Sequence record: NC_047815.1
Length of the DNA stretch: 64,000 nt
Strand: one strand, 5' to 3'
The notes under the pieces are model-generated. The model worked only from the letters and a program-made list of their open reading frames with translations, did no database searches and was not told the DNA's origin. The position numbers and the translations under genes were made by a program. Shown here piece by piece: positions 657-60,600 of this stretch. How positions within the stretch are numbered: the stretch's first letter is position 1; each line of letters opens with the position of its first letter.

Positions 657-2678
657 CTAACCAAATACGATGTTTGAAATTGCAAGATAGGTCACATCAT
701 TCGAGTTACCGCGATCTCCACCACCAAACGCGTACAGCCAAACTTCTTCGCCTGCTGGAATGTTGGTATCAAACGTAATTGTCTGCATGACGTTGGCGCT
801 GTTGTATACCCGCTGTGCAGCAGCCTCACCAGCATAACGCTCATAGATAGACATATCATGCCATGCTCCGTTGATACCATCAAACACCCACTGGAATGTG
901 ATCTGCTTGATAGGCTTGACGAAGCTGTTGTTGAACTTGAACCAGCCTTGAGAGCCACCCCAGAAGTTCATGTAGCTGCCATCCCACGCTTTGAGATTCG
1001 CTACACTGCCACTAACACCGCGACCATCAACTTGATCGAATGCGTAACAGAACCAAGGTAAATCATCAGCTATTGGCGGCTGTGCTGAACCTCCCTCAAT
1101 AACAACGCAACGATAAGGAACAAGGAAGTCGCTGACGTCAATCTTAGGCGGCTGCACAGGACAGTAAACAAAGTATTGCCAGTCACAACCAATAGCTGCC
1201 GTCACTCGCACCACGATGTTCTGACGCAGCACATGTTCGGGATACTTCCAGAACTCAAGCGTACCAGTAGAGTTAGCTCCAAGAATCTCTGTGTCAAGCA
1301 GGTTCATGCTCTGATCAAACACTTCAAACTTGGTAGCGAAGTTGCCACTGTTGACCTGAATCAAACCAGCACGAATATCTGTCTGCGCACCAAGTGCAAA
1401 GCAGTCTTCTGTAACAGGATGACCCATGCTGCTGACTGTATAGCTTTCACAAGGGTGTCTGTACTCACGCGCACCACGTTCGGACGGGCAGTACAGATTG
1501 TAGTAGTTCGACTGTAAACTAGTTGCTGAACCAAAATCCTTGCTGACTACACGAATCATCAGGTCATAGCAGTTACTGCCACGTGGGTCAAACAGGAAGT
1601 AGAGATAACCGTTTGCTGTTTGTGCGTCAAGCGTTGTAGCAATACGACGACCACTATGATAGACCTCAATAAAGTCATAGGTCTCCCACGATGTGAAGTC
1701 AAGATACATCCAACCAGCAACCGTACCGATATAGTGATAATACTCAAACGCATTAGCATCCTGTATGCGAGCAGCAATAGGATAAACAGATGCGTGACAC
1801 GGTGCTGGGAATACTGGAGTACCGATATAGTCAGGATGCACAACATCTGGGAAGTTGATAACATCATAACTAAGCTGACTGTCTAGTGCTAAATTACCAC
1901 GATCAGAGGTTACAACAAGGCGCGGCGGGAACACTTGCAGCGACCAGTGAGCACCAGCCTCTGTACGCACACGAACCATGATACGCATGTCATCAGCATC
2001 TGGATCGAACTGGAATTTGATACGACTACGACCAGCTACCTTACCGCAAGTTGATGCAACACGCACACCCATATGATACACGTCAACGCTCATGCCGCTA
2101 GCTACATAGGATGCGAACATTAGCTCGACATATCCCTCAACAGCAGGCATAGCAAACACAGTTTCTGTGATTACTGCGCCCCTGCCATGAACACTAGCAT
2201 ACGGTACATTCGGGTTAGCATAGGTACCAAGTCCAGTACGTGAGCTTGCTCCGACGGGATCGTATGACTCGAACGTTTTAATACCAGGACGATTGATAGC
2301 ACGACCAGTCGGCGGCGCGTAGTTATTGAGTAGACCAAAGCCAACACGTCCAGCATCAGGCAAGTCAAAGCCAGGAGGATATCCGATAAGCTGGTCATAC
2401 GTAGGGCCACCACTACCATCGCCAGTACCACTACCCTTAGTTGTTGAAGTAGGGCCACCGCCACACTCACCTGTTTCAAGGTTGAGACACGGATCATCAT
2501 ACGTCGGGTCATAGCTGTCATCAATATCATGCCAACGTTTACCGTACAGATTGCGCACGCTGAACTTGTCAGGCAACAGCGGTGCCCAATCTCCCTCTTG
2601 CGTGCGCACAAACATCGGAGTATCGACGCAATCGAGCCAGCCGTTATTGGCTTTATTTCTTACGCGAAAGCGTGCCAT
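657..2678 (-). CDS. Virion fibre/appendage-like protein with three internal beta-rich repeats
   Basis: 673 aa; AGGAG RBS; three ~90-aa repeats (VDVYHMGVRVAST / IEVYHSGRRIATT / FEVFDQSMNLLDT); lies in the fibre cluster. Confidence 0.55.
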   Translation of the reverse strand: MARFRVRNKANNGWLDCVDTPMFVRTQEGDWAPLLPDKFSVRNLYGKRWHDIDDSYDPTYDDPCLNLETGECGGGPTSTTKGSGTGDGSGGPTYDQLIGYPPGFDLPDAGRVGFGLLNNYAPPTGRAINRPGIKTFESYDPVGASSRTGLGTYANPNVPYASVHGRGAVITETVFAMPAVEGYVELMFASYVASGMSVDVYHMGVRVASTCGKVAGRSRIKFQFDPDADDMRIMVRVRTEAGAHWSLQVFPPRLVVTSDRGNLALDSQLSYDVINFPDVVHPDYIGTPVFPAPCHASVYPIAARIQDANAFEYYHYIGTVAGWMYLDFTSWETYDFIEVYHSGRRIATTLDAQTANGYLYFLFDPRGSNCYDLMIRVVSKDFGSATSLQSNYYNLYCPSERGAREYRHPCESYTVSSMGHPVTEDCFALGAQTDIRAGLIQVNSGNFATKFEVFDQSMNLLDTEILGANSTGTLEFWKYPEHVLRQNIVVRVTAAIGCDWQYFVYCPVQPPKIDVSDFLVPYRCVVIEGGSAQPPIADDLPWFCYAFDQVDGRGVSGSVANLKAWDGSYMNFWGGSQGWFKFNNSFVKPIKQITFQWVFDGINGAWHDMSIYERYAGEAAAQRVYNSANVMQTITFDTNIPAGEEVWLYAFGGGDRGNSNDVTYLAISNIVFG

Positions 2679-2687
2679 GCTAGCTCC

Positions 2688-3545
2688 TTATAAATACGAA
2701 CGGACAACCGATGCAAGCACAGGCCGTCCTAAATGTTTCGATAAGGATTTGGCATACGCTTGCGCAAATTCTTTCTTTGAATCGAAGCGGTGCTTGTGCA
2801 TTTTGAAGTTCTTCCTCAAAGTTTTAGCATCAACGCCAGTGTTGTTTACGTTAAGTTTGCAGAACGGTGCATTGACGTGCTTCCATCCGCTTTTAGCCGC
2901 ACCATATAGAGCATTATCACTCATGTTTAGCCCATGCTTTTCAGCAAACGTCATGATATGGGTTTTGAGCCGAATAGATCCGTCATAAGACACACGCATC
3001 TTTACCACAAGATCATCAGTCAGCTTAGCAGTATGTGTACGCACGCCATTCACACCACTACCGTTTTTCCACATATCCTTATTATTATCGGCGTCTGTGC
3101 CCCAAGCAAGATTCTCAAAACGATTATCCCAAGGAATATCATTCAAATGACGGACGAGGCGACAGCCAGCAGGGCAAGGCGGTCCGAATGTTTCGAGTAC
3201 GAGTCGATGCACACGAACTTTATGCCTTACACCGGAAGTGTCAGTTACGTGAAACTTCTGATATCCTTTAGTGCTGAACTGCATCAGGAAGTTCTTTGTG
3301 TATGACCAAACACGGCCATCGCGATACACAGCATATCGCACACCATAACAGTCCACATCAACATAGTCACCTTTTGGTGGCGCAATGTCTTTGCACTTCT
3401 CACCCTTCAAAATCTTTCTGCAATAAGGCAGTGCGATTTCATACTTCTTGGCAAGAGCTGTCATCGTATCGAACTTACCTGAAACCCAATCTGAACGAAT
3501 GCGCTGCGCTCTGTCAAATGCTTCGGCTGTTGTTAATCTGGTCAT
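2688..3545 (-). mobile_element. Free-standing HNH homing endonuclease (NUMOD4/HNH_3 type)
   Basis: YAVYRDGRVWS...VHRLVLETF...VRHLNDIPWDNRFENLAWGT..DN is the typical phage HNH signature. Confidence 0.85.
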
Positions 3546-3575
3546 GGCAATCTCAACTATAGGAGCAATGTGGGT

Positions 3576-3581
3576 AAATTA
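3576..3581 (-). promoter_or_regulatory. TAATTT candidate late-promoter element (HNH gene)
   Basis: 31 nt upstream of the start; one of nine similarly placed copies. Confidence 0.5.
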
Positions 3582-3616
3582 CTAAATGCGTACCCAAACT
3601 GCCCCTTAAATTAAAA

Positions 3617-4105
3617 TTATGCCCTCACCCAAATTGCACCTGCGCTGACGGTCTGTGTGAGTGATGGATCATCTGCTTGAACATACACTTCTAACACTCC
3701 ACTTGCGCCAGTAGGTCCAGTAGCACCAGTGTTGCCTGTAGGACCAATCCAACCACGAATACCCTGAATACCCTGCTTGCCTTTATCGCCTTCACGACCA
3801 CGAGCACCTGGACAGCCATCAGTGCCTCGACGACCATCAGTACCCATCAGACCGTTGATACCGTCTGAGCCATCAGAGCCAGGGATACCTGCTGGGCCAT
3901 AGCCAATATCGTTAACAGTAGGCAGTCCATTGATAACTAGCTTACCAACGTTTGGGATGTTGATAGAAAGCTGGCCATTCTGTCTGTCAAATACTCCATC
4001 AAGCGTATCAGTAGACAGCGTGCGTACTGATAGTCCTGTTTCTTGGGAAACGACTTCACCTGTTGAGTCGGCTTTAATCATTCCCACATCAATTTTTTGT
4101 ACCAT
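3617..4105 (-). CDS. Collagen-like (Gly-X-Y) fibre protein C
   Basis: 162 aa with 22-23 uninterrupted GXY triplets. Confidence 0.85.
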   Translation of the reverse strand: MVQKIDVGMIKADSTGEVVSQETGLSVRTLSTDTLDGVFDRQNGQLSINIPNVGKLVINGLPTVNDIGYGPAGIPGSDGSDGINGLMGTDGRRGTDGCPGARGREGDKGKQGIQGIRGWIGPTGNTGATGPTGASGVLEVYVQADDPSLTQTVSAGAIWVRA

Positions 4106-4118
4106 AACCTTTTACCTC

Positions 4119-4748
4119 TTACGGCCAGACGGCACCTTGATCTACATTTGGGTTAACCCAGATCGTCCCGACCTCTACCGCCCCTGGATTTGTAGTTGAA
4201 ACGATAATCCTTACGCGACCTGCAGGACCCGCAGCGCCAGTTGGGCCAGTAGGTCCCGTTGCACCAGTTGCACCAGTTGGGCCAGTACCGCCACGAGGAC
4301 CAGTAGGGCCTACGTTGCCATCAGGGCCAGTAGGGCCAGGCTCCCCACGTTGCCCTTGTTCTCCAGGCAGTCCGGGACGACCATCTTTACCAGCTAGACC
4401 CTGATTGCCATCTGGACCCTGAGCACCAGTACAGCCAGCAGCACCAGCAGCACCGTCGCGTCCGTCACGCCCATCTTTACCGTCAGCACCTGTAGCACCA
4501 CGAGCACCTTGACGACCTACTGGAATATCGCTTGCTGTTGGAAAGCCCGAAACACGTACAGACTCACCGTTAGCAAACGTTAGAGTCATGATACCGCTTG
4601 TTGAATCATAGCTACCGCTAGAGATTTCAGCAGCAGCCGTAGATTCCGCAGTAGACACAACCAACTTGCCGGCCTGTGCTCGCAACGTGGCATTCTCAAG
4701 CGAAGTGCCAGCAGCAATCAGACCGCTTTTAACTTGAACTAATGGCAT
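4119..4748 (-). CDS. Collagen-like (Gly-X-Y) fibre protein B
   Basis: 209 aa with 33-34 uninterrupted GXY triplets. Confidence 0.85.
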   Translation of the reverse strand: MPLVQVKSGLIAAGTSLENATLRAQAGKLVVSTAESTAAAEISSGSYDSTSGIMTLTFANGESVRVSGFPTASDIPVGRQGARGATGADGKDGRDGRDGAAGAAGCTGAQGPDGNQGLAGKDGRPGLPGEQGQRGEPGPTGPDGNVGPTGPRGGTGPTGATGATGPTGPTGAAGPAGRVRIIVSTTNPGAVEVGTIWVNPNVDQGAVWP

Positions 4749-6182
4749 TTACGTTTTCTCCGCTTGCGCAACGATATCCGTATTATGTACCAGAACGTCA
4801 CCAACGTAATAACAATCATAAGGCTCAACGTCTATGTCAACTGTCATGACCTGCTCATAGATGCGCTCGACTTCGTACACAAGAACAGGGCCTTTACGCC
4901 CAGCAACCTTCATGCCTCGACGAACATCACGCGCTGGTACATATCGCCACACAGTGTCGTTTACCAGTATTGGATGCTCATGCGTGAATCGCTGACCGTT
5001 GATCAAGTAGTAGTGGTCTTCTTGACCGTAGCGCAAGGCACGCACAGCAGCATGTTCGTTGTGACCACGCAGCGATTTGCTTGTGTAGTCACGGAACTCT
5101 TTGGGCTGTTCTGTACGAGCAAGCAAGCTATCACCTACTACAAGTTCTTCGACACGACGATCACCCAGCACGGTCTCAACTACGGAGCCGAACACGATAC
5201 AGCCAGATTGAACACCTTGAGGGTTACGTGCAACAAAGGTGATTGTGGCAGTAGCAGTAGCTGTGGGGCGACTTGTTTGACCTAGGTCAGTTACAACACA
5301 GGTAATCTTGCCTGTAAGTATCTTCTCAGAACCAGGTTCAACACGACCATCAAACTTAATCTGAACCGTGCTGGTGGTGTCATCTGCAATAGAGATATTC
5401 TCCATCTTGCTGATTGACCACTTGTACTTGTAGCCACCACGACCGCCACGCACGTTGACAGGCAAGTAAGCTAGGGCATTAAACAAGTCACTTCCCTGCA
5501 CCGATCGCTGTCCAACCATACTGACGTTTGAAGCACTAGCACTCAGTGTTTGAATCGTAGGCAGTGCAGGAGCAGGAGTACCTGCCGCTGTTGGATAAAG
5601 CCACGCAAACACACGACTGTCTGTTGGAACAACTGTTGATACTACGGCTGTTTCAATAGGAGCGGGCCCAGTAGGACCCGTTGCACCAGCAATACAGCTC
5701 GGACCATCATTGCCCCGTGGCCCTAAAGGACCAGTAGTGCCAGTAGCACCAGTCGGGCCTTTTCGTCCTACGGGGCCGGGATAACCAGGATAACCAGGCG
5801 GTCCTTGCTCACCATCTTCACCATCTGTACCATCTGTACCATCGAGACCCCGATTGCCAGAACCGCCTTCGCAGCCACTGACACCAGTTTCTCCGTCACG
5901 ACCATCACGTCCGTCACGACCAGTAGCGCCCGGCGCTCCTCGCTGACCGGGCTTACCTTCACCAAAGCTCGCTATAGTAGGTAGGCCACTGACTTCGACA
6001 ACTTCACCGTTCAGTTTGATGAACGTCAACACGCCGTTAGCACTAGAAAACTTTATCTTGGCTATCTGCGTTTGTGTCTGCAAGTCAGTGGTTTCAAACT
6101 GTAGCGTACCATCTGATGCAATGGCTTCTTTACCACTATCGTTAACATCTGTTGAGATCTGAGTGATACTCAAAGTTGTCAT
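4749..6182 (-). CDS. Collagen-like fibre protein A with Ig-like domain and C-terminal Hint (intein-like) domain
   Basis: 33 GXY triplets, a beta-sandwich-like segment, then C328-IVFGSVV...THEHP...VLVHN467-T. Confidence 0.85.
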   Translation of the reverse strand: MTTLSITQISTDVNDSGKEAIASDGTLQFETTDLQTQTQIAKIKFSSANGVLTFIKLNGEVVEVSGLPTIASFGEGKPGQRGAPGATGRDGRDGRDGETGVSGCEGGSGNRGLDGTDGTDGEDGEQGPPGYPGYPGPVGRKGPTGATGTTGPLGPRGNDGPSCIAGATGPTGPAPIETAVVSTVVPTDSRVFAWLYPTAAGTPAPALPTIQTLSASASNVSMVGQRSVQGSDLFNALAYLPVNVRGGRGGYKYKWSISKMENISIADDTTSTVQIKFDGRVEPGSEKILTGKITCVVTDLGQTSRPTATATATITFVARNPQGVQSGCIVFGSVVETVLGDRRVEELVVGDSLLARTEQPKEFRDYTSKSLRGHNEHAAVRALRYGQEDHYYLINGQRFTHEHPILVNDTVWRYVPARDVRRGMKVAGRKGPVLVYEVERIYEQVMTVDIDVEPYDCYYVGDVLVHNTDIVAQAEKT

Positions 6183-8506
6183 CTAGGCTCGACCTTAATG
6201 CATAGATTACCAATCAGTTTGCTGCTGTAGGCACTAACCTGACTGTCGGTCACGCGAACCTTAGCAACGATTTCAACGTAACCTTGAGGCTGGTTCTCAA
6301 TCGTGATGTTGAACATCTGCGTCAGGCTGGCGTTAGCGTAGGCGATAGCTTCTGTGCCGTTAGTATCAACAACATTGAAACCCGCTGAACCTGTACCTTT
6401 AAGACCACGAGCGTATGCTGCTTCTGGACTGCCTGGCGTCTTGACACCAACAACAAACTCAATGTGTTCTTTACCGCTTGTGACAGCAAAGCCAGGACCG
6501 AGTTGACACGCAAAGTCAGCACTAGCAGTAATGATAAGTTCTTTCTTGAACTCAATGCGCTGCGTGATAACCAGTTCTTCTGTGTCTTGTTCAACGTTCT
6601 GAATGTTGTACACAGCTTTAGGGTCAACGGATGCCGCTTCTGCTTGCGTGTTAACGATTGTTACTTCGGGCCACACACCGTCAATACGAATGCCTTTACC
6701 TTGAATCATAGTAGGAACAGGCATAGGCACAACAACAGGTGTTTGTCCTTGACGCTTGAACATGTAACCGTTAGGAGTAGGCACAACGTCAATGATAACG
6801 CCATCAATCGAACTCTCTTTTGAGCCAACTGATTTAACGTTTTCAAACACTGTGATTTCAACTAAGGTATTCGCCTCAATAGGAGTGCTCAGTTTCAGCG
6901 TGTTGGTAACAAGACTGAACTCGCTGTAGTGGGCAACAACACCGCCAACGTTCACAACACAGTATGCTTTACTTACTGGTGTGATTGGCAGAATAAACGT
7001 GTCTTGCTGGAACGGGAAGGTATACTGTGCAACACGAATGCGTGTAGACCAGCCTTGACGTTCTTCATAGCGAGCACAATACAGGCTGACACCAATACCA
7101 CTTGGAATAGATTCAACAAAAGCAAGGCTGTTGCCGTTGTTGATCTTGTAGCTGATTGATGGCTGCCACGTATTACCAACAATGGCAAACACGTGGTCTG
7201 CTGAATCAACAGCCGTTCCGAGATTGAATGTATCAGTCTGACCATCACCGATAGTGTCGATAACGTCAAACAGTACAACGTGTCCCTGAGTTGGTTCAAG
7301 ACGGAACTGACGCAGGTCAAGTGTGATTGATTCAGGCACACTACCACTAAGCTGCATCGATGTGCCTTGCGCCAGATAAGCAGTGCGAGGCTGCAAGATA
7401 CCACTAGTACCAACAAACAGGTCAGTAGCACTGTCAACGTCTTCCGTTAAAGCATACACAAGCTGCTCAGGTACTGCCGTTGTTACAACAGACGAGAACT
7501 GCAACTTGCCTGGAGGCGTAAACAGCGTAGCAGTCGATTGACGTGCGCTGCTTGAATTCGGAGCCCAATAAGGTTCGTCATTTTCACCGCGACACAGCAT
7601 CCACTCTGTTGGAACATCGTTGTTGAGCGGCCACGGAATACCTGGTGTTGGTGTAATAGGATTCGTGATACGCTGCCAAACAGCAACAGTTGTCTGGGCA
7701 CTAATGAAAGGAATAGCTTGTCCTTGATTAACAAGCTGACCTGTCTTGTCGTATTTGAAATGACGACATGCGCCAGCACCAGGACCGCTTACCGTTTGAA
7801 CGATAACTGTCTCACCCTGTTTCAGACTGAGGTTAGCAATCTTAAACGTGTTGGCATTGATGAAAGCAGTACCCAGCAGATCAGCATACACTCGGTCGTG
7901 CTCACTGAAAGCCCAGTAATATCCACCAGCACCATAGCGTGACGCTGTGCCTGGACTTGATGTACCGTCTGAGTTCGTGTGCAGGTCAAGAACCGATACA
8001 ACGTTGAACTGGTTGTCATTCAGGGACGGGAGATTATCAAGCGTGGCCACACTTGGTACGGTTGCATAGTCATACATTTCAACAGCAAGAATCTTTTGAA
8101 TATCTTGCTGAATGTGAACCAAAAGGCTGATGCGCGTTACAGCATTAGGTACGGCAATAATAGGCTCATTAAGCACAACATGCCCAAAGGCACGATTGTC
8201 TTTGAGCAAAATGAGGATTTCACCGATTTGTTTTAAGTCGTCGCCTGCGTTGAACGTAAGTTTTACGTCAAAGATGAAGCGGGCACTGTTTTCTGTCAGC
8301 ACTTGCACATAGCTCAGTTTGCCTGATGCAAGTTCATTACCAAGTAACTGTTCAGGTACGTCGCTGGGTTCTGCTCCAACGAAATCGCCAACCTTAAAAG
8401 CTACTGGCTGGACAGCAATACCTCCACTATTAGCATCGGCAACGGCCTGCTCACCTTGTGATGTAAGTCTTAGCGCATCAACATAGATAGAGGATGTGGC
8501 AGCCAT
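6179..8506 (-). CDS. Baseplate/tail-fibre attachment protein
   Basis: 775 aa; N-terminus resembles tail-collar/fibre proteins; three GDGxTxxFxL-type wedge repeats; follows the wedge genes. Confidence 0.55.
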   Translation of the reverse strand: MAATSSIYVDALRLTSQGEQAVADANSGGIAVQPVAFKVGDFVGAEPSDVPEQLLGNELASGKLSYVQVLTENSARFIFDVKLTFNAGDDLKQIGEILILLKDNRAFGHVVLNEPIIAVPNAVTRISLLVHIQQDIQKILAVEMYDYATVPSVATLDNLPSLNDNQFNVVSVLDLHTNSDGTSSPGTASRYGAGGYYWAFSEHDRVYADLLGTAFINANTFKIANLSLKQGETVIVQTVSGPGAGACRHFKYDKTGQLVNQGQAIPFISAQTTVAVWQRITNPITPTPGIPWPLNNDVPTEWMLCRGENDEPYWAPNSSSARQSTATLFTPPGKLQFSSVVTTAVPEQLVYALTEDVDSATDLFVGTSGILQPRTAYLAQGTSMQLSGSVPESITLDLRQFRLEPTQGHVVLFDVIDTIGDGQTDTFNLGTAVDSADHVFAIVGNTWQPSISYKINNGNSLAFVESIPSGIGVSLYCARYEERQGWSTRIRVAQYTFPFQQDTFILPITPVSKAYCVVNVGGVVAHYSEFSLVTNTLKLSTPIEANTLVEITVFENVKSVGSKESSIDGVIIDVVPTPNGYMFKRQGQTPVVVPMPVPTMIQGKGIRIDGVWPEVTIVNTQAEAASVDPKAVYNIQNVEQDTEELVITQRIEFKKELIITASADFACQLGPGFAVTSGKEHIEFVVGVKTPGSPEAAYARGLKGTGSAGFNVVDTNGTEAIAYANASLTQMFNITIENQPQGYVEIVAKVRVTDSQVSAYSSKLIGNLCIKVEPR

Positions 8507-8534
8507 TTTAAACTCCTGTTAGATTAACACTAAG

Positions 8535-8542
8535 AAATTAGC
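8535..8542 (-). promoter_or_regulatory. GCTAATTT candidate late-promoter element
   Basis: 29 nt upstream of the start at 8506. Confidence 0.55.
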
Positions 8543-8550
8543 AACAAATG

Positions 8551-8591
8551 AAAAAGGGCCCTAGGAACATCGCGCTCCCAGAACCCTTTTT
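8551..8591 (-). terminator. Intrinsic terminator (possibly bidirectional)
   Basis: AAAAAGGG-TT-CTGGGA...TCCTAG-GG-CCCTTTTT on the minus strand, just after the 1509-aa gene. Confidence 0.7.
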
Positions 8592-8593
8592 GT

Positions 8594-11500
8594 TTACTCG
8601 TAACGCACAGTCACAACAGCAGGACCGAAGGCACGCACGTTGGTGCGATACACATTCCAGCTCTCTGTGAGATTGTCATACGTTTTTCTCAGCACAAGAG
8701 GACCACGCTGTCCGTCATTACCAGTTACAGGCCACTTAGCTCCATCAAACGCTGTCCAGTCTGGATTGATGTTGCCCTGAGCATCGGCACCAGCAGCAAA
8801 CTGCGCTGAACCGTAATCAGCACGCGAAATGAAATAGCCGTACTCATCAGTTTTAGGACTCAACACAAACGTACCGCCAACTGAACTACGCAGACGGTTA
8901 GTTATTGCGGTTTCTACACCAGCAACGGTGTTCACACCAAACGGTGCTGTACCGAAACGTGGGTAGCTTGAGTAGGCACGCATGTAGTGTACCTGAGTAA
9001 GTCGCACATTGTTTTCGATATAAGTTGCCTTGACACCGAAATCAACGTCTGCCAGTATCTTGCCAATAGTCAACATACCTGTTTGCGCATTGATCGAGAT
9101 ACCAGTAAGAGTAACCGTGTCACCCTTGCTGTTGGTAGTCTGCCAAAGAGTAGATGCGGTAACATCATCTTTAACAAACGTACCTGTACGGCCAAGCTGC
9201 GCTTTCATCTGCATGGTGCTATCGTCACGCACATTAACAAAGCCAACGACTGTAAGATCTTGTGGGAAACCAATACCCGGACAGGTTACATCAATCGCCG
9301 TAGTGATGGACGTGCGCTGTTCGGTAACAGTGACCTCGATCGTTACTGTTTGAGGCTGCTCACTGGGTGCAAACTGAAACTTGCCTGTCTGCGCATCAAT
9401 CGTAAAGCCGGGCACAGAACTTGTTACCTGCCAGTCAAAGCTGACCGTATCTGAATCAGGAACTGCGCTTGAACCAGTCTGTTCATCACGGCGTTCATAG
9501 CTAGCAACAGCCTGATACTCTCGGTTCGGCTCAATATTTGATGCAGGTAAATCGATAGCAACGCCAGTGATTGTGCGCGTAGACTGCATCTGAATAACGC
9601 GTGTACCACTGATGGTTTCTACAGCCTGAGTATCTGGATTGATTTTCTTGTAGACAGCATTGATACGAATCCTACCGTCCGACAGTTGAGCATCAGCCAA
9701 ATAAACATAGCCGTTGAGTGCGTCAATAGATACGCCATCAACGTTTGTATCATCACCGATAGACCACGTTGCATCTGTGGTTTCAATCTCTGTGGTATCT
9801 TGAAGAATAACACGCAGAGAATACGGCACGTACCAACGACCATCTTTGTATGCAAGAGTTGGGTTTCTGTCTGATTGATCCCAATACACTTCAGGACCCA
9901 CAATGCTGATACTACGAAGATATGTATTAGCAAGGTTGATGTACACAGTCAGGAACTTTTCAATTGCATATCCATCACAGATAAACTGCGCACGAATACG
10001 CACAGCACAGTTTGCGTTGACATTTACTGTGAGGTTACCGTCTTGGTCGATCTCCGCAACAGTATCGTCTGTTGGTTCAAGCACAATGGCGCTGTCGTCG
10101 TTGCGTTCAAAGTACCAACTGTTAACGATAGACCAGTCCGATGAGACCTCAACATCAAACTGTTTCTTTTCGCCTTCAACATAACTACCATCAAGCTGTT
10201 GAACAATGCCGCCTGATTCGTAGGTGTTTACCAGCGCATAGCTCTCACTGAGAATAGCAGCACTGATGCTGGTGGCACCCTCGATACGACTGTTGAGAAT
10301 CGTATTGATGCTCGGCATTGGAGTTGGTTCGATTGTTACCTCAAACTGTGTTTCGATACGATAGAAACGCGCACGCACCGCAGCTGAGGTTGTCTCGTTT
10401 GATTTACCAATCTGAACAACAGCACCATCGTACAAGGTAGTAGCAAGTTGCTGCATCGTACCAATCTGGTCAAACATAGGCAGCTTGCTGATCTTCATTT
10501 GTCGGAAGTCTTTAATGTCTGTTGGTGCACGACCTTCAACAGTTTCAACAATAGCAGTACCAGTGTATGTACCAGGAACAAAGCGCAACAGTTCATAGTC
10601 ATCTGTGTCTTGATCAGGCCAAACACCAGACCAACTAGCAGCTTGCACATACTCCTGAACGCCATCTGCATACGTAGCAAACAGACGAGCAAAGGTACGC
10701 GACTGGTCAAACAGTTCGTCAGGCATTTCAATCAAGATAGTATCGACCAATGCACGCACAGGCACAACTTGGAAGTCACGCGTGTTTGTGATTGTTGTAC
10801 CCTCAAACTCATACGTCATTGTCACGCGAGCAACACCATGCAGATCGCCAGTATAGTACAGCAACTGAATAGGTTGTTCACGCTGCAACTGTTTGTCGTA
10901 CAAGGTGCCAGCACCGTTAGAGATTTCGACATTAACCCACTGCGAATAGTCGGGATTGTCTGGGTCATACACAGTCGGATCAGCACCAATAGCAACTGCC
11001 TGCTTTTGCAGTTCAATGATGCGCGCACGGGCTTCTTCTACAGCACTGGCCGAAGGGATATACTCGACGGACATAGCACATGCAGCCGCATAGCTTGAAC
11101 CATCAGACCAAAGAGCAACAGTAGGCAGGTTGATGAAATCACCGCTTTTCACACGACTGCCGCTAACAACGTCAACAATCTTTGGCGTGAGGACAGTATC
11201 ATACACAGGAAAGATTTCGCTGAATGTACGAAGCATCGAACCATCTACAATGGAAACATGCAGAATGAAATCGAGATAGCCATCATCAATCGTAGGTGCT
11301 TGGAACTCACCTGTTTGAGGATTGACTTGAGGTAAGGCGTATATGCCGCTAGGAATATCTTCGCTGCTGAACCAAGTACCTTCAAGTTCCTGATAGGCCA
11401 CAACAACTGAGCTATCGCGATCATTGATCTGCTGCTGTGTTGCTGTCTCAAGCACAAACAAACCCATAGCTTTAGGCGTGATGTTCTGACGTTCCATGAT

Positions 11501-57641: not shown

Positions 57642-60600
57642 TTACGGTTGACCAGACAGCGGATCAGCACTGCCGTACACAACGCTGTATTTGTAGTAGG
57701 TCTGATCGAACGGGAAGTCATTACGATAGATAATGTAATCACTGCCGTCAATCGTTACCTCAGCAGCACCGACGAAGTTAAAGTCGTCATACTCCTGAGC
57801 ACCATCCCACGAACCAGCAAAGCCGTAGCTACCACTTGAATAATCGCGGAAGTAACCATAGCCCAAACTCTTCGGCCAAATGACATAGAAGAATTTGCCG
57901 TTACCGCTAGTAGAGCCACCAGCAGGACACTCAATGAACTGCTCACCAGTCGTTGTCAACTGAGTAGCAAGTGCCATTGCCCAAGCTTTGGTATAACCCG
58001 CAGCTGAGGTAATCTTGTTGCTGACACCGAAGCGAGCACCAATCGCATCACCACCGCCACCTGACGGAACAGACACAGCAACATCTTTTGTCGCAGTCTT
58101 TGTTGAACCGTTACGGGTATAGCTCACAGTCACAGTGATAACACCTGCAACAGTAGCGCCACCAGTTTGCAGCAGACCACTGTTAGAGATAAGTGGGTTA
58201 GTGATAGAACCCGACTTGACCTGCATGGTCCACGTAGCGTTTGTACCAACGTCAACGATAGTACCGTCACTGAGAGTAGCAGTACCTACATACTGACCGT
58301 TCTGACCGCCAACGATTGAGTCTGGACCTGTCAGCACAAGGCTATCAATGGTCACAGGCGTAACGCTGTTGGTAACAAACTTGCTTGCTGTGTAGGTCTG
58401 ACCGTTCTTGGTAGCAGTCACTTTGACTTGAGCCTGCTTGGTAGCAGAGATAGTGTTACCAACAATAGTATCATTGCCTGGATAGGTAAACACTTTGTCT
58501 GTGTCAGTGCCCGTACCGCCATAGCTTGTTACAGGAGTCAGGTCTTCTGTAGCACCAGTGTCAGGATAAGTCAGACGCAGGATATACGTACCTGTTTGAC
58601 CAGCATTCACTGTGTCAGGACCAACAATTGAAGCGACTGGTGTTGACGCTACGTTAAGCAGACGAATAGACTTCGTAGGCTTGTACGTTGAACCTTCAAT
58701 TGTCAGAGTAGCAACAGTAAGCGTTGCGTTCTGATCAGCGGACAAGGCATCTTTCGCCACGGCAACTTTCTTGGTGTAACCGTAAGTACCAGTAACGATA
58801 GTAGCATACGCACCACCAGCAGACAGTGAATATGTCGGGCTAGTTGCTGTGTATGTTTCAACTTTACCACTAGCACGAGTAATCTGCACAGAGTAGTCAC
58901 TGGAAGTTGAGTTCTCAGTCACAGTGTCTGGACCGATAATATCAACAGTTGCAATGCTGTCAGTAGGACCTTTAACAGTAAACACAGCAGTGCTGGATTT
59001 GCTATCAGTTCCAACCTTAGCAACTACATTTACAGTAAACGTTTTGTCACCGTACCAACCATTCAGCACGCGCTTGGTGCGAATCTGCCAGACGGTGTTT
59101 GCAGTCGGTGCAACCAGTTCAAAGTAAGTCTGCGTATCACCAGCGGCCAGAGTATAGGTAAGCTCGGACGCAAGGCCATCACGCGTAGAGCTATCGCTGA
59201 ACGTCAGAATGGTTTGCAGAGACTTAGCCAAAGCTGTTGCGTCGTTGAACGCGTAGGCTGGAGTAGGTTGCTGTAAGGCAGCAGCGGTCAACGTGATAAC
59301 AATAACGTTCTTGATTGTCACGGTCTTTTGTGCAGTCAAGCCATTAGAAGCAGCACGCAGCAGCACGCTAGAATCAGCAGTAACCGAACCAACAGTCAGC
59401 ACACCAGTCTGAGCGATTGTTGCAAAGGCACTGCCCTGCACAACAGTCCAAACAGGATTCGAGACTTTAACTTCTGAACCATCCGAGTAGATAGCATAGC
59501 ACTCAAATGTAGAGGCAGTTTCCTCATTCATTTGGTCAACGCCACGTACTTCCAGATTAACGATAGTTGGCGCTTGACCCACCAGCGTTACGTCCAGCGT
59601 TGCAGTCTTGGTGATGTTGTTTTCGATGTAAGTTGCGCTGATAGTCACGCTTGACGTAGCCACGTTAACAGCACCAACAGTCAACTTACCATCGGCAAAC
59701 TGTGCATACTGATTAGCAGCAGTCAGTTTGAAATCGTTCGGTGTAACTGTTTTGGTAGAACCATCAGTGTATGTCGCAAGCACCGTGTAGTTGCTTGTGG
59801 TGTTTTGATTCACTGAGTTGCTGCCGATGATCTTGATACTGGCCAGATCAACAACTACAATCACGTTCAGGATGTTAACATCCAGCGTAGCAGTTTTGGT
59901 AATACCGTTATCGGTGTAGCTTGCGCTCAACACAACTTTCGTGTCTTGCTCAACACTGCCTGCTGTTACCGTCTTGTTCACGATAGTAGCAAACTGTGCA
60001 AGGTCCACAGTAAACGTCAGCGGGTTAACAGTTTTGGTAGTGCCGTCACTGTATGTAGCAAGGAACGTATAGTTCGCGCTGTTGTTTTCCTGAATGCTGT
60101 TAGCGCCCTGAATTTCGAGCTTGCTCAACACAGGTGCAACCGTTGCATGAATGATAGTGATTGGCTTGGTAGCTTCAATCGTCTGACCATTCGAGGTATA
60201 AGCTGCTTTCAGGTTAACTGCACGATCAGCAGTCTCTTCCTTGTTAGCAGTTACCTTATTTGCTGCAACGACAGTGTAGGTTGAAGGCTCAGCACGGAAA
60301 TAATCAGGCGTTACAATCTCTGTCTTGCCGTTGCTGTACGTCACACGGAACGTATAGCTAGCAGAGGCTTCACTGTTGATTGTATCAGCGCCAACGATTT
60401 CCAGCTTGGTCATGACCTGAGCTTTAATCGTTACTGTCTTCTCGGCAGTCAGCGCAACACCGTTATAGGTGTAGGTAGCAGTCAGCTTGACAGGCGTGTC
60501 TGTGCGAGCAGTACCGGCAACACCAGTCAAGCCAGTAAGCGCAAGCAGCGCATCGTCAGCAGAGGTGAAGTTGTCCGGCACTACAGGGCTTGAGCTACCT

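Follow-up and report, generated by a model that had tools for sequence, protein, structure and literature searches.

Fixed-length collagen-like rods in four paralogous fibre proteins of Erwinia phage Yoloswag, and possible in-register association of two of them

Three consecutive collagen-like genes lie on the minus strand of the 64,000-nucleotide stretch of sequence record NC_047815.1 analysed here (hereafter the window), and they raise the question of whether their products, chains A (gp103), B (gp102) and C (gp101), assemble with one another or each on its own. Window positions 3000-9000 are 100% identical to Erwinia phage vB_EamM_Yoloswag, a jumbo myovirus of 259.7 kb that infects Erwinia amylovora and is a member of the "hairy Myoviridae" (Lu11/PaBG/Y3 group); window position equals Yoloswag record position minus 62000. 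An initial annotation, made from the letters of the window, had suggested that all three chains might co-assemble and be locked by disulfides. The partnership that we tentatively favour is narrower. Based on sequence comparison among related phages, A and B would associate in register, probably in one mixed helix, and C and a fourth paralog, gp95, would form separate homotrimers. We give this reading a probability of roughly 0.45. The evidence that carries it is the frozen length of the rods and the covariation of charges between A and B.

Chain architecture and conservation of the rods

The initial annotation described three consecutive genes with one architecture, namely an N-terminal domain, a run of Gly-X-Y triplets and a C-terminal cap, and the open reading frames (ORFs) are laid out exactly so. 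The features of the four paralogs are as follows.

4749..6182, minus strand: chain A gene (gp103, 477 aa), with N-domain, 33-triplet rod, cap, Ig-like domain and bacterial-intein-like (BIL)/Hint domain
5958..6182, minus strand: A N-terminal beta-rich domain (aa 1-75), homologous to the N-domains of B, C and gp95
5661..5957, minus strand: A collagen rod (aa 76-174, 33 triplets), ~28 nm if triple-helical, with an acidic patch at triplets 13-17
5871..5873, minus strand: A Cys104, X position of triplet 10 (GCE)
5694..5696, minus strand: A Cys163, in place of the triplet 30 Gly (CIA), kept in all A-type chains seen
5592..5660, minus strand: A cap motif (aa 175-197)
5202..5591, minus strand: A Pro-rich linker and Ig-like beta-sandwich (aa 198-327), a moderate-confidence model with Ig-like matches
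4782..5201, minus strand: A Hint domain, bacterial-intein-like, from Cys328 to His466-Asn467, with profile and fold matches
4752..4781, minus strand: A C-flank, ten residues past His-Asn, whose codons GCGGAGAAA contain the Shine-Dalgarno sequence of gene B
4119..4748, minus strand: chain B gene (gp102, 209 aa), start codon abutting the stop of A
4518..4748, minus strand: B N-terminal domain (aa 1-77)
4212..4517, minus strand: B collagen rod, 34 triplets (33 to GPA, plus GRV)
4431..4433, minus strand: B Cys106, X position of triplet 10 (GCT)
4122..4211, minus strand: B cap (aa 180-209)
3617..4105, minus strand: chain C gene (gp101, 162 aa)
3899..4105, minus strand: C N-terminal domain (aa 1-69)
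3692..3898, minus strand: C collagen rod, 23 triplets (22 plus G-V-L), ~20 nm, with a basic patch at triplets 11-16
3812..3814, minus strand: C Cys98, X position of triplet 10 (GCP)
3620..3691, minus strand: C cap (aa 139-162)
Record 58693-59514 (L050:3694-4515), minus strand: gp95, the fourth paralog (273 aa), ~2.5 kb beyond the window start

All three rods exceed the 27.2-bit cut-off of the Pfam Collagen model PF01391, with 52.6 bits for A, 58.8 for B and 56.9 for C. The counts in the initial annotation agree with ours: the rod of A finishes in GPA after 33 triplets, including the interrupted triplet 30 with its Gly-to-Cys change, B likewise runs 33 triplets to GPA, C has 22-23, and a Cys occupies the X position of triplet 10 in each (GCE, GCT and GCP). 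Both of its motifs are real but needed correction. The N-terminal motif marks homologous domains (~25% identical among the paralogs, with G..L...G(L/F)PT nearly invariant), although its spacer is eight residues and not six. The cap motif common to A, B and C is (I/V)xV(S/Q)xxxP...G.(I/L)W(V/I), in which the P-to-W spacing varies among chains (7, 8 and 11 residues). The rods of A and B are equal in length and their caps align, and the rod of A carries a conserved acidic patch at about triplets 13-21. The initial annotation omitted the Ig-like and Hint domains of A, the paralog gp95, and the presence of the triplet 10 Cys (Cys-10) in a fibre whose collagen gene stands alone.

The fourth paralog shares the N-domain of A, B and C and has 24 triplets, with GCP at triplet 10, followed by a globular C-terminal head; its relatives have a weak match to Pfam Gp53-like_C. 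Such gp95-like genes (D-type below) accompany the trio in other loci too. In Yoloswag, gp95 is followed by gp94, a 157-aa protein annotated "tail fiber protein". AlphaFold2 (AF2) monomer models gave predicted local distance difference test (pLDDT) values below 50 for the rods and 49 for the whole of B; the model of A is moderately confident, only in the Ig and Hint domains.

The triplet counts of 33, 34 and 23 (A, B and C, respectively) recur with zero indels in 13 GenBank phages from at least seven genera. They are also found, with N-domain identities down to ~39%, in phage NCTB and the Afa-NA1/Sen-NF records, as well as in 24 IMG/VR loci and seven metagenomic loci, and the pattern reaches the distant metagenomic loci L042, L044, L153, L154 and L156. 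In total, about 40 related loci carry the invariant rod lengths (a metagenome scan returned only 3 loci, which were redundant). Residues at X and Y diverge to about 45-50% identity while the triplet counts stay fixed, and the alignment of B, which covers 45-71% identity, has no indel in the rod.

A search of 1.84 billion representatives with the N-domain profile found 93 proteins, many of which are A-like (33 triplets, Cys-30), B-like (34) or C-like (23). Nearly all of the collagen-bearing proteins among these matches have a Cys at or next to triplet 10, and about a dozen have other rod lengths, of 16-32 triplets. As background we used 121 unrelated phage collagen ORFs, which are generic phage collagens from an IMG/VR scan with the B alignment, a query that picked collagen patterns. 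These range from 12 to 335 triplets, and only 8 of the 121 contain any Cys. Given this spread, the invariance of the family indicates that rod lengths and Cys position are under strong selection.

One distant member departs in the style of its charges. In L156 (SRR18474599_331939) all three rods are animal-like, with acid at X and base at Y (GEK/GDK). This locus keeps 33 triplets in A, 34 in B and the Cys positions; its C is truncated by the end of the contig, and its repeats are interrupted.

Across the ~40 related loci, Cys-10 and the Cys-30 of A are near-universal. The exceptions for Cys-10 are A alone in the Salmondvirus clade, and C, which is without any Cys in L044 and L047. The same N-domain, Cys-10 and cap are also found in a 1249-aa fibre with L-type lectin domains, the sole Collagen-match gene called in its locus. 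Because Cys-10 is present both in gp95 and in this lone-collagen lectin fibre, it is a trait of the family rather than a lock for three chains; judged from its distribution, it is inherited family-wide and does not support co-assembly.

The geometry of the rod points in the same direction. In a canonical collagen helix, the beta-carbons of same-level X residues on neighbouring chains are an estimated ~7-9 Å apart, which is too far for a disulfide. A knot of the collagen III type, with Cys at Y/G or at Y(n)-X(n+1), does not correspond to Cys-10, which is at X in all chains. The only knot-compatible residues are the Cys-30 of A at its Gly position, a rare Y9 in L156 and Y29 in L154, and the Cys pairs suited to bonding within a helix are Y9+X10 in L156 and Y29+G30 in L154. 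For the exposed Cys-10, a role in joining one rod to another, or rods to a shared partner, is more likely than one in joining the chains of a single helix. In L044 and L047, A and B jointly carry a further Cys at triplet 20 and C is Cys-less, which speaks for a partnership of A with B.

Within the family the Cys residues fall at triplets 10, 20 and 30 (P0011, P0021, P0034, P0050, P0089, L044 and L047). This ten-triplet spacing is about one supercoil repeat of the 10/3 collagen helix, and the C and D rods are shorter than those of A and B by 10-11 triplets.

Charge covariation and the composition of the fibres

Ion pairs were counted between Y(n) of one chain and X(n) or X(n+1) of the next in a one-residue-staggered triple helix. 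This contact model, which comes from the collagen-peptide literature, is crude. In Yoloswag the self-contacts (attractive/repulsive) are 25/0 for BBB, 13/16 for AAA and 9/11 for CCC. Mean net trimer scores (attractive minus repulsive) over 10 phages are about -1 for AAA, 14 for AAB, 23 for ABB and 25 for BBB, and the best-scoring composition that contains A is A1B2; in phage Yen9-02, AAA has a net score of -18. When compared with shuffled sequences, A-A contacts are worse than expected from the chain's own triplets (-3.43 vs -0.62, z -4.2), B-B contacts are better (z 4.8) and B-C contacts are worse (z -3.6), and A-C, C-C and all pairs with D are neutral. The percentile of the self-score relative to the background collagens was uninformative because most background rods are uncharged.

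The charges of A and B covary between phages. Over triplets 9-33, where the rods are variable, A-B pairs from the same phage have a mean score of 5.07, vs 1.85 for cross-phage pairs (z 6.2). The excess is maximal at zero register shift and gone by a shift of three triplets, and only Y-X pairs show it, at d = 0/+1 and, in one of the two directions, at d = -1. With one representative for each of 9 clades the values are 5.12 and 1.13 (P<0.002 in all 200 resamplings), and against shuffles of triplet order the signal has a z of 8.1. Leaving out triplets 15-17 does not remove it, and either half of the rod shows it when taken alone. In a set of 17 phages z is 6.25, and for 10 A chains their own B ranks top of the 17. 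Co-located A-B pairs occur at lineage-specific triplets, namely 20-21 in SNU7, 22-26 in Afa-NA1, 20/21 in the Alexandra clade, 26 and 28/29 in JA11, and 22 and 31/32 in NCTB, and in Yen9-02 also.

Gene conversion between A and B was considered as the source of this signal and rejected, since identity at X and Y has no same-phage excess (z -0.2); triplet 16 is the sole triplet that A and B ever have in common, and leaving it out does not abolish the signal. Neither A-C nor B-C pairs show charge covariation between phages, nor do pairs with D. A pairing of C with gp95 was also discarded, as there is no complementarity past the conserved first 8 triplets.

In our reading, gp103, gp102, gp101 and gp95 are four paralogous short fibre proteins of a baseplate/tail-fibre module, each built from a ~70-aa beta-rich N-terminal anchor, a collagen-type rod and a small beta cap. 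The number of triplets in each rod is set by selection, at ~28 nm for A and B and ~20 nm for C and gp95, and each rod exposes a Cys ten triplets from its anchor. Chains A and B may then run alongside each other with no offset, most likely as parts of a mixed A/B triple helix, whose register would be set by the N-domains and by the co-evolving charge pairs. Such a helix would bear a single asymmetric Ig-like head, matured by the BIL domain. In this scheme B would be able to pair with itself and A would repel itself, and C and gp95 would go into homotrimers of their own. The stricter claim that A and B are wound in one true heterotrimeric helix, probably A1B2 or A2B1, is possible but doubtful.

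Several points weigh against a mixed A/B helix. Every characterised prokaryotic or phage collagen is a homotrimer (review PMC8968730). The Cys-30 of A at a Gly position, together with the Cys-Cys of L154 at Y29/G30, suggests at least two A chains per helix, and this would bring in the repulsive A-A interface. The module can presumably homotrimerise, because its N-domain, Cys and cap also occur in the lone-collagen fibre. Two distant loci, L153 (score -1) and L154 (score 1), are without the A-B signal, and the inverted charge style of all chains in L156 is a lineage-wide confound. Moreover, the z-scores overstate the number of independent events because the phages are related, and the Y-X specificity is no independent proof of intra-helix geometry, given that acids are mostly at Y and bases mostly at X. 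Two laterally packed homotrimers would give the same in-register covariation.

Two alternatives without mixed helices therefore have to be weighed. It is unlikely, though a serious contender, that A3, B3, C3 and D3 are independent homotrimeric fibres docked by their homologous N-domains at different baseplate or tail sites. The equal lengths and Cys-10 would then derive from the ancestral gene, each kept by its own structural constraint, and the invariance among orthologs fits homotrimers equally well: the initial annotation had taken independent variation of Cys position and length as a sign against co-assembly, and hardly any variation is seen. Independent fibres also agree with the homotrimeric state of all characterised prokaryotic and phage collagens (PMC8968730) and with the presence of Cys-10 and the module in the lone-collagen fibre and in gp95 with its own globular head. 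B-B is self-complementary, at 25 attractive to 0 repulsive contacts, and A alone has the Gly-position Cys, which could form an intra-helix disulfide only with another A. Intra-helix disulfides of this kind are known from Gly-to-Cys alpha1(I) mutants. What independent fibres leave unexplained is the in-register A-B covariation over at least 9 clades, while A-C, B-C and D pairs show none, and also the self-contacts of A below its own-triplet shuffle (with -18 for AAA in Yen9-02).

Lateral packing of separate A3 and B3 rods, with the N-domains anchoring them at the same level and C3 and D3 possibly joining, seems rather improbable. Here Cys-10, and Cys-20 where present, would form inter-rod disulfides after lysis and give a bundled stalk like the N-terminal one of C1q or the collectins. 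Lateral contacts would suit a covariation that is in register yet reaches d = -1 one way, a wider spread than contacts inside a helix would strictly give, and they would suit a Cys at a solvent-exposed X position at equal distance from the anchor in all four paralogs, the extra Cys at triplet 20 in A and B jointly, and the estimate that X-X disulfides inside one helix are geometrically unfavourable. However, an A3 rod would be a ring of up to 30 uncompensated acidic residues (Yen9-02), only one face of each rod would be buried and yet the complementary pairs run along the whole rod, and C has Cys-10 but no complementarity with A or B.

The assembly closest to the initial annotation, one A, one B and one C in a single heterotrimeric helix with a Cys-10 disulfide lock, is very improbable. 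It draws on three adjacent and tightly coupled genes with a common N-domain and a Cys at the same triplet, and in the crude ion-pair count over the first 23 triplets ABC exceeds the mean of AAA, BBB and CCC in 10/10 phages. This advantage comes mostly from the diluted self-repulsion of A and from taking the best of six registers. In every lineage C is shorter by 10-11 triplets, so that a stretch of only two chains would protrude; contacts between B and C score below the shuffled level, those between A and C match it, and neither pair covaries. There are four paralogs, not three. The lock is not supported either: Cys-10 is also found in gp95 and in the lone-collagen fibre, it is lost singly, from C in two lineages and from A in one, and its exposed X position has a geometry unsuited to an intra-helix disulfide. 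Of the proposed co-assembly of different chains, what survives is the part that concerns A with B, for which equal length, gene coupling and covariation speak; the three-chain A:B:C fibre is not supported.

Hint domain of A and genomic setting

Past the cap, A continues with the Pro-rich linker, the Ig-like beta-sandwich, the ~140-aa Hint domain and ten further residues. Residues 328-467 are closest in sequence and fold to BIL domains. A Hint profile searched against the PDB matched 2LWY ("bacterial intein-like domain") with an E-value of 3.4e-10, and the AF2 model of this part (pLDDT 70-86) was matched by Foldseek to 2lwy with a template modelling (TM) score of 0.81 and to 6y75 (Tetrahymena BIL2) with a TM of 0.75; mini-inteins also superpose. 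Pfam Hint_2 scores 25.3 bits on A, just below its cut-off of 28.4. The Hint signature residues of A are Cys328, T400-H403 (TxxH) and H466-N467. The +1 residue after the domain is mostly Thr, with Val in Yen9-02, Met in Afa-NA1, Ala in NCTB and Glu in L044. The domain would presumably cut itself off between Gly327 and Cys328 during maturation.

The domain behaves as a movable C-terminal appendage of these fibres that is optional between lineages. In L044 chain B carries it, L046 has it as a gene of its own, and NCTB has an additional copy in the form of a stand-alone 153-aa gene. Hint-free A alleles are found in Salmondvirus (JA11, JA29, L035 and L037), where they end in ...ARNPK just before Cys1 and have no C-flank. 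A true, canonical intein in A is ruled out, as the Hint-free alleles are not colinear and the +1 nucleophile is not conserved. The idea that A loses Cys-10 when it loses the Hint domain, as seen in Salmondvirus, was likewise rejected, because P0045, P0047 and P0067 are without Hint yet have Cys-10.

The nine bases GCGGAGAAA in the last codons of A are nucleotide-invariant across genera, while adjoining codons vary synonymously. They contain the GGAG ribosome-binding site of gene B, and this invariant site largely explains the conservation of the C-flank, which we had considered as a sign of splicing and do not retain as such. The stop of A and the start of B abut in Yoloswag and overlap as TAATG in most relatives. 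The A and B genes are translationally coupled.

The consecutive minus-strand ORFs gp103, gp102 and gp101 sit within a tail-baseplate-fibre gene module, the setting expected of phage fibre proteins. Upstream are genes for a PAAR protein, a baseplate wedge protein, a 1509-aa tail protein and a 775-aa protein, and downstream are an HNH endonuclease, a 673-aa protein, a long-tail-fibre-like protein and more fibre genes. The order of ~1500-aa protein, 775-aa protein, A, B and C is the same in every locus. RefSeq labels the collagen genes "virion structural protein", which is a label only. PHROG 8745, whose annotation as "tail fiber protein" is itself inferred, matches B over the N-domain and rod (E 1e-41). 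The gene next to A is the following.

6179..8506, minus strand: gp104, 775-aa protein with a weak N-terminal tail-collar-fibre match

The N-terminal match of gp104 to Phage_tail_fib is weak and below cut-off. A homologue of 763-775 aa stands directly upstream of A in every locus examined, and in Yoloswag the gp104 stop overlaps the A start as ATGA. We consider gp104 a candidate partner to which the collagen fibres could dock.

A terminator-like hairpin with a 19-bp stem (window 8551-8591, minus strand) lies between the genes for the 1509-aa tail protein and the 775-aa protein, so the 775-aa gene may be transcribed together with A, B and C as a separate unit. Between C and the 673-aa gene, Yoloswag alone has an HNH endonuclease gene (window 2688-3545, minus strand; Pfam HNH_3), which looks like a recent mobile endonuclease insertion; in pEa_SNUABM_5, Y3, Alexandra, AD1, JA11, Yen9-02 and others, C is followed directly by a 670-aa gene. 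A second HNH gene, gp93, adjoins gp94/gp95. The 673-aa protein itself (window 657-2678, minus strand) is called "putative large intein domain protein" in RefSeq. It had no Pfam match at E<=0.01 and matched only a PHROG of unknown function, and the intein label looks unsupported.

Two of the records used above deserve caution. Alcaligenes phage Afa-NA1 (L015, 78 kb) and Salmonella phage Sen-NF (L016, 108 kb) have identical A, B and C proteins, and the records differ in assigned host and in length. They look like pieces of one jumbo-phage genome, in which case at least one host assignment or assembly is doubtful.

Relation to known collagens and significance

The collagen-like proteins EPclA and EPclB of Escherichia coli O157:H7 prophages are likewise phage fibres with a hydroxyproline-free, bacterial-type rod (Ghosh et al., 2012; PMC3368898). 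They are homotrimers by experiment, and their flanks differ from those described here, being PfN, the alpha-helical PCoil and PfC (PMC3368898). In both groups non-collagen trimerisation domains flank the rod and the genes lie in tail-fibre regions. The Yoloswag family is distinguished by its own N-domain, which has no Pfam model, and by fixed triplet counts, Cys-10 and four paralogs; to our knowledge, EPcl proteins lack a conserved Cys, their rods vary in length, and each fibre is encoded by one gene. The streptococcal Scl1/Scl2 and Bacillus BclA proteins are similar in having charge-pair-stabilised rods without hydroxyproline and a terminal globular nucleation domain. These form homotrimers, and strains differ widely in their number of repeats, whereas the repeat number of the Yoloswag family is frozen across genera.

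Animal collagens offer other likenesses. The C1q and collectin chains come from tandem paralogous genes. Each has a short N-terminal stretch and a stalk of a few dozen triplets that contains a conserved interruption, Cys residues tie chains or trimers to one another, and different chains associate in register. In C1q, however, three chains of equal length form one heterotrimer, gC1q heads are on all chains, and the disulfides are in the N-terminal non-collagen segment; in Yoloswag the Cys is inside the rod at X, C is shorter, and only the A-B pairing is supported. Type I collagen, (alpha1)2 alpha2, also combines a self-pairing chain (alpha1, comparable to B) with an apparently non-self-pairing chain (alpha2, comparable to A) over equal helix lengths. 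It differs in that its chains are selected by large C-propeptides, have ~338 triplets and are hydroxylated, and there is no homology to the Yoloswag rods beyond Gly-X-Y.

For the Hint domain, the best matches to A 328-467 are the BIL domains of Clostridium thermocellum (2LWY) and of Tetrahymena BUBL (BIL2, 6Y75). They have in common with it the N-terminal Cys, TxxH, the C-terminal His-Asn, the lack of an endonuclease and a non-conserved +1 residue. Unlike those BILs, the domain of A is attached at the C-terminal end of a phage fibre protein with a collagen rod, and it is optional between lineages.

A mixed A/B helix, if true, would be the first case outside animals of a natural collagen with mixed chains. 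In this compact system, which does without hydroxyproline, rods of ~100 residues would encode both chain selection and register in their sequence, and it would overturn the view of heterotrimers as an animal invention that needs large propeptides. It would also offer a natural and recombinantly accessible model for the control of composition and register, a long-standing design problem for collagen chemists. Even if A and B are separate rods, their fixed numbers of triplets and the placing of a Cys at triplet ten from the anchor show that these phage rods serve as molecular rulers or struts; in other phage and bacterial collagens, by contrast, the repeats expand freely.

For the hairy jumbo myoviruses, Day et al. 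considered the hair-forming proteins unknown and annotated tail fibres as candidates (PMC6143709). Set beside this, A, B, C and gp95 are obvious candidates for the "hairs" or fibre network of these phages.

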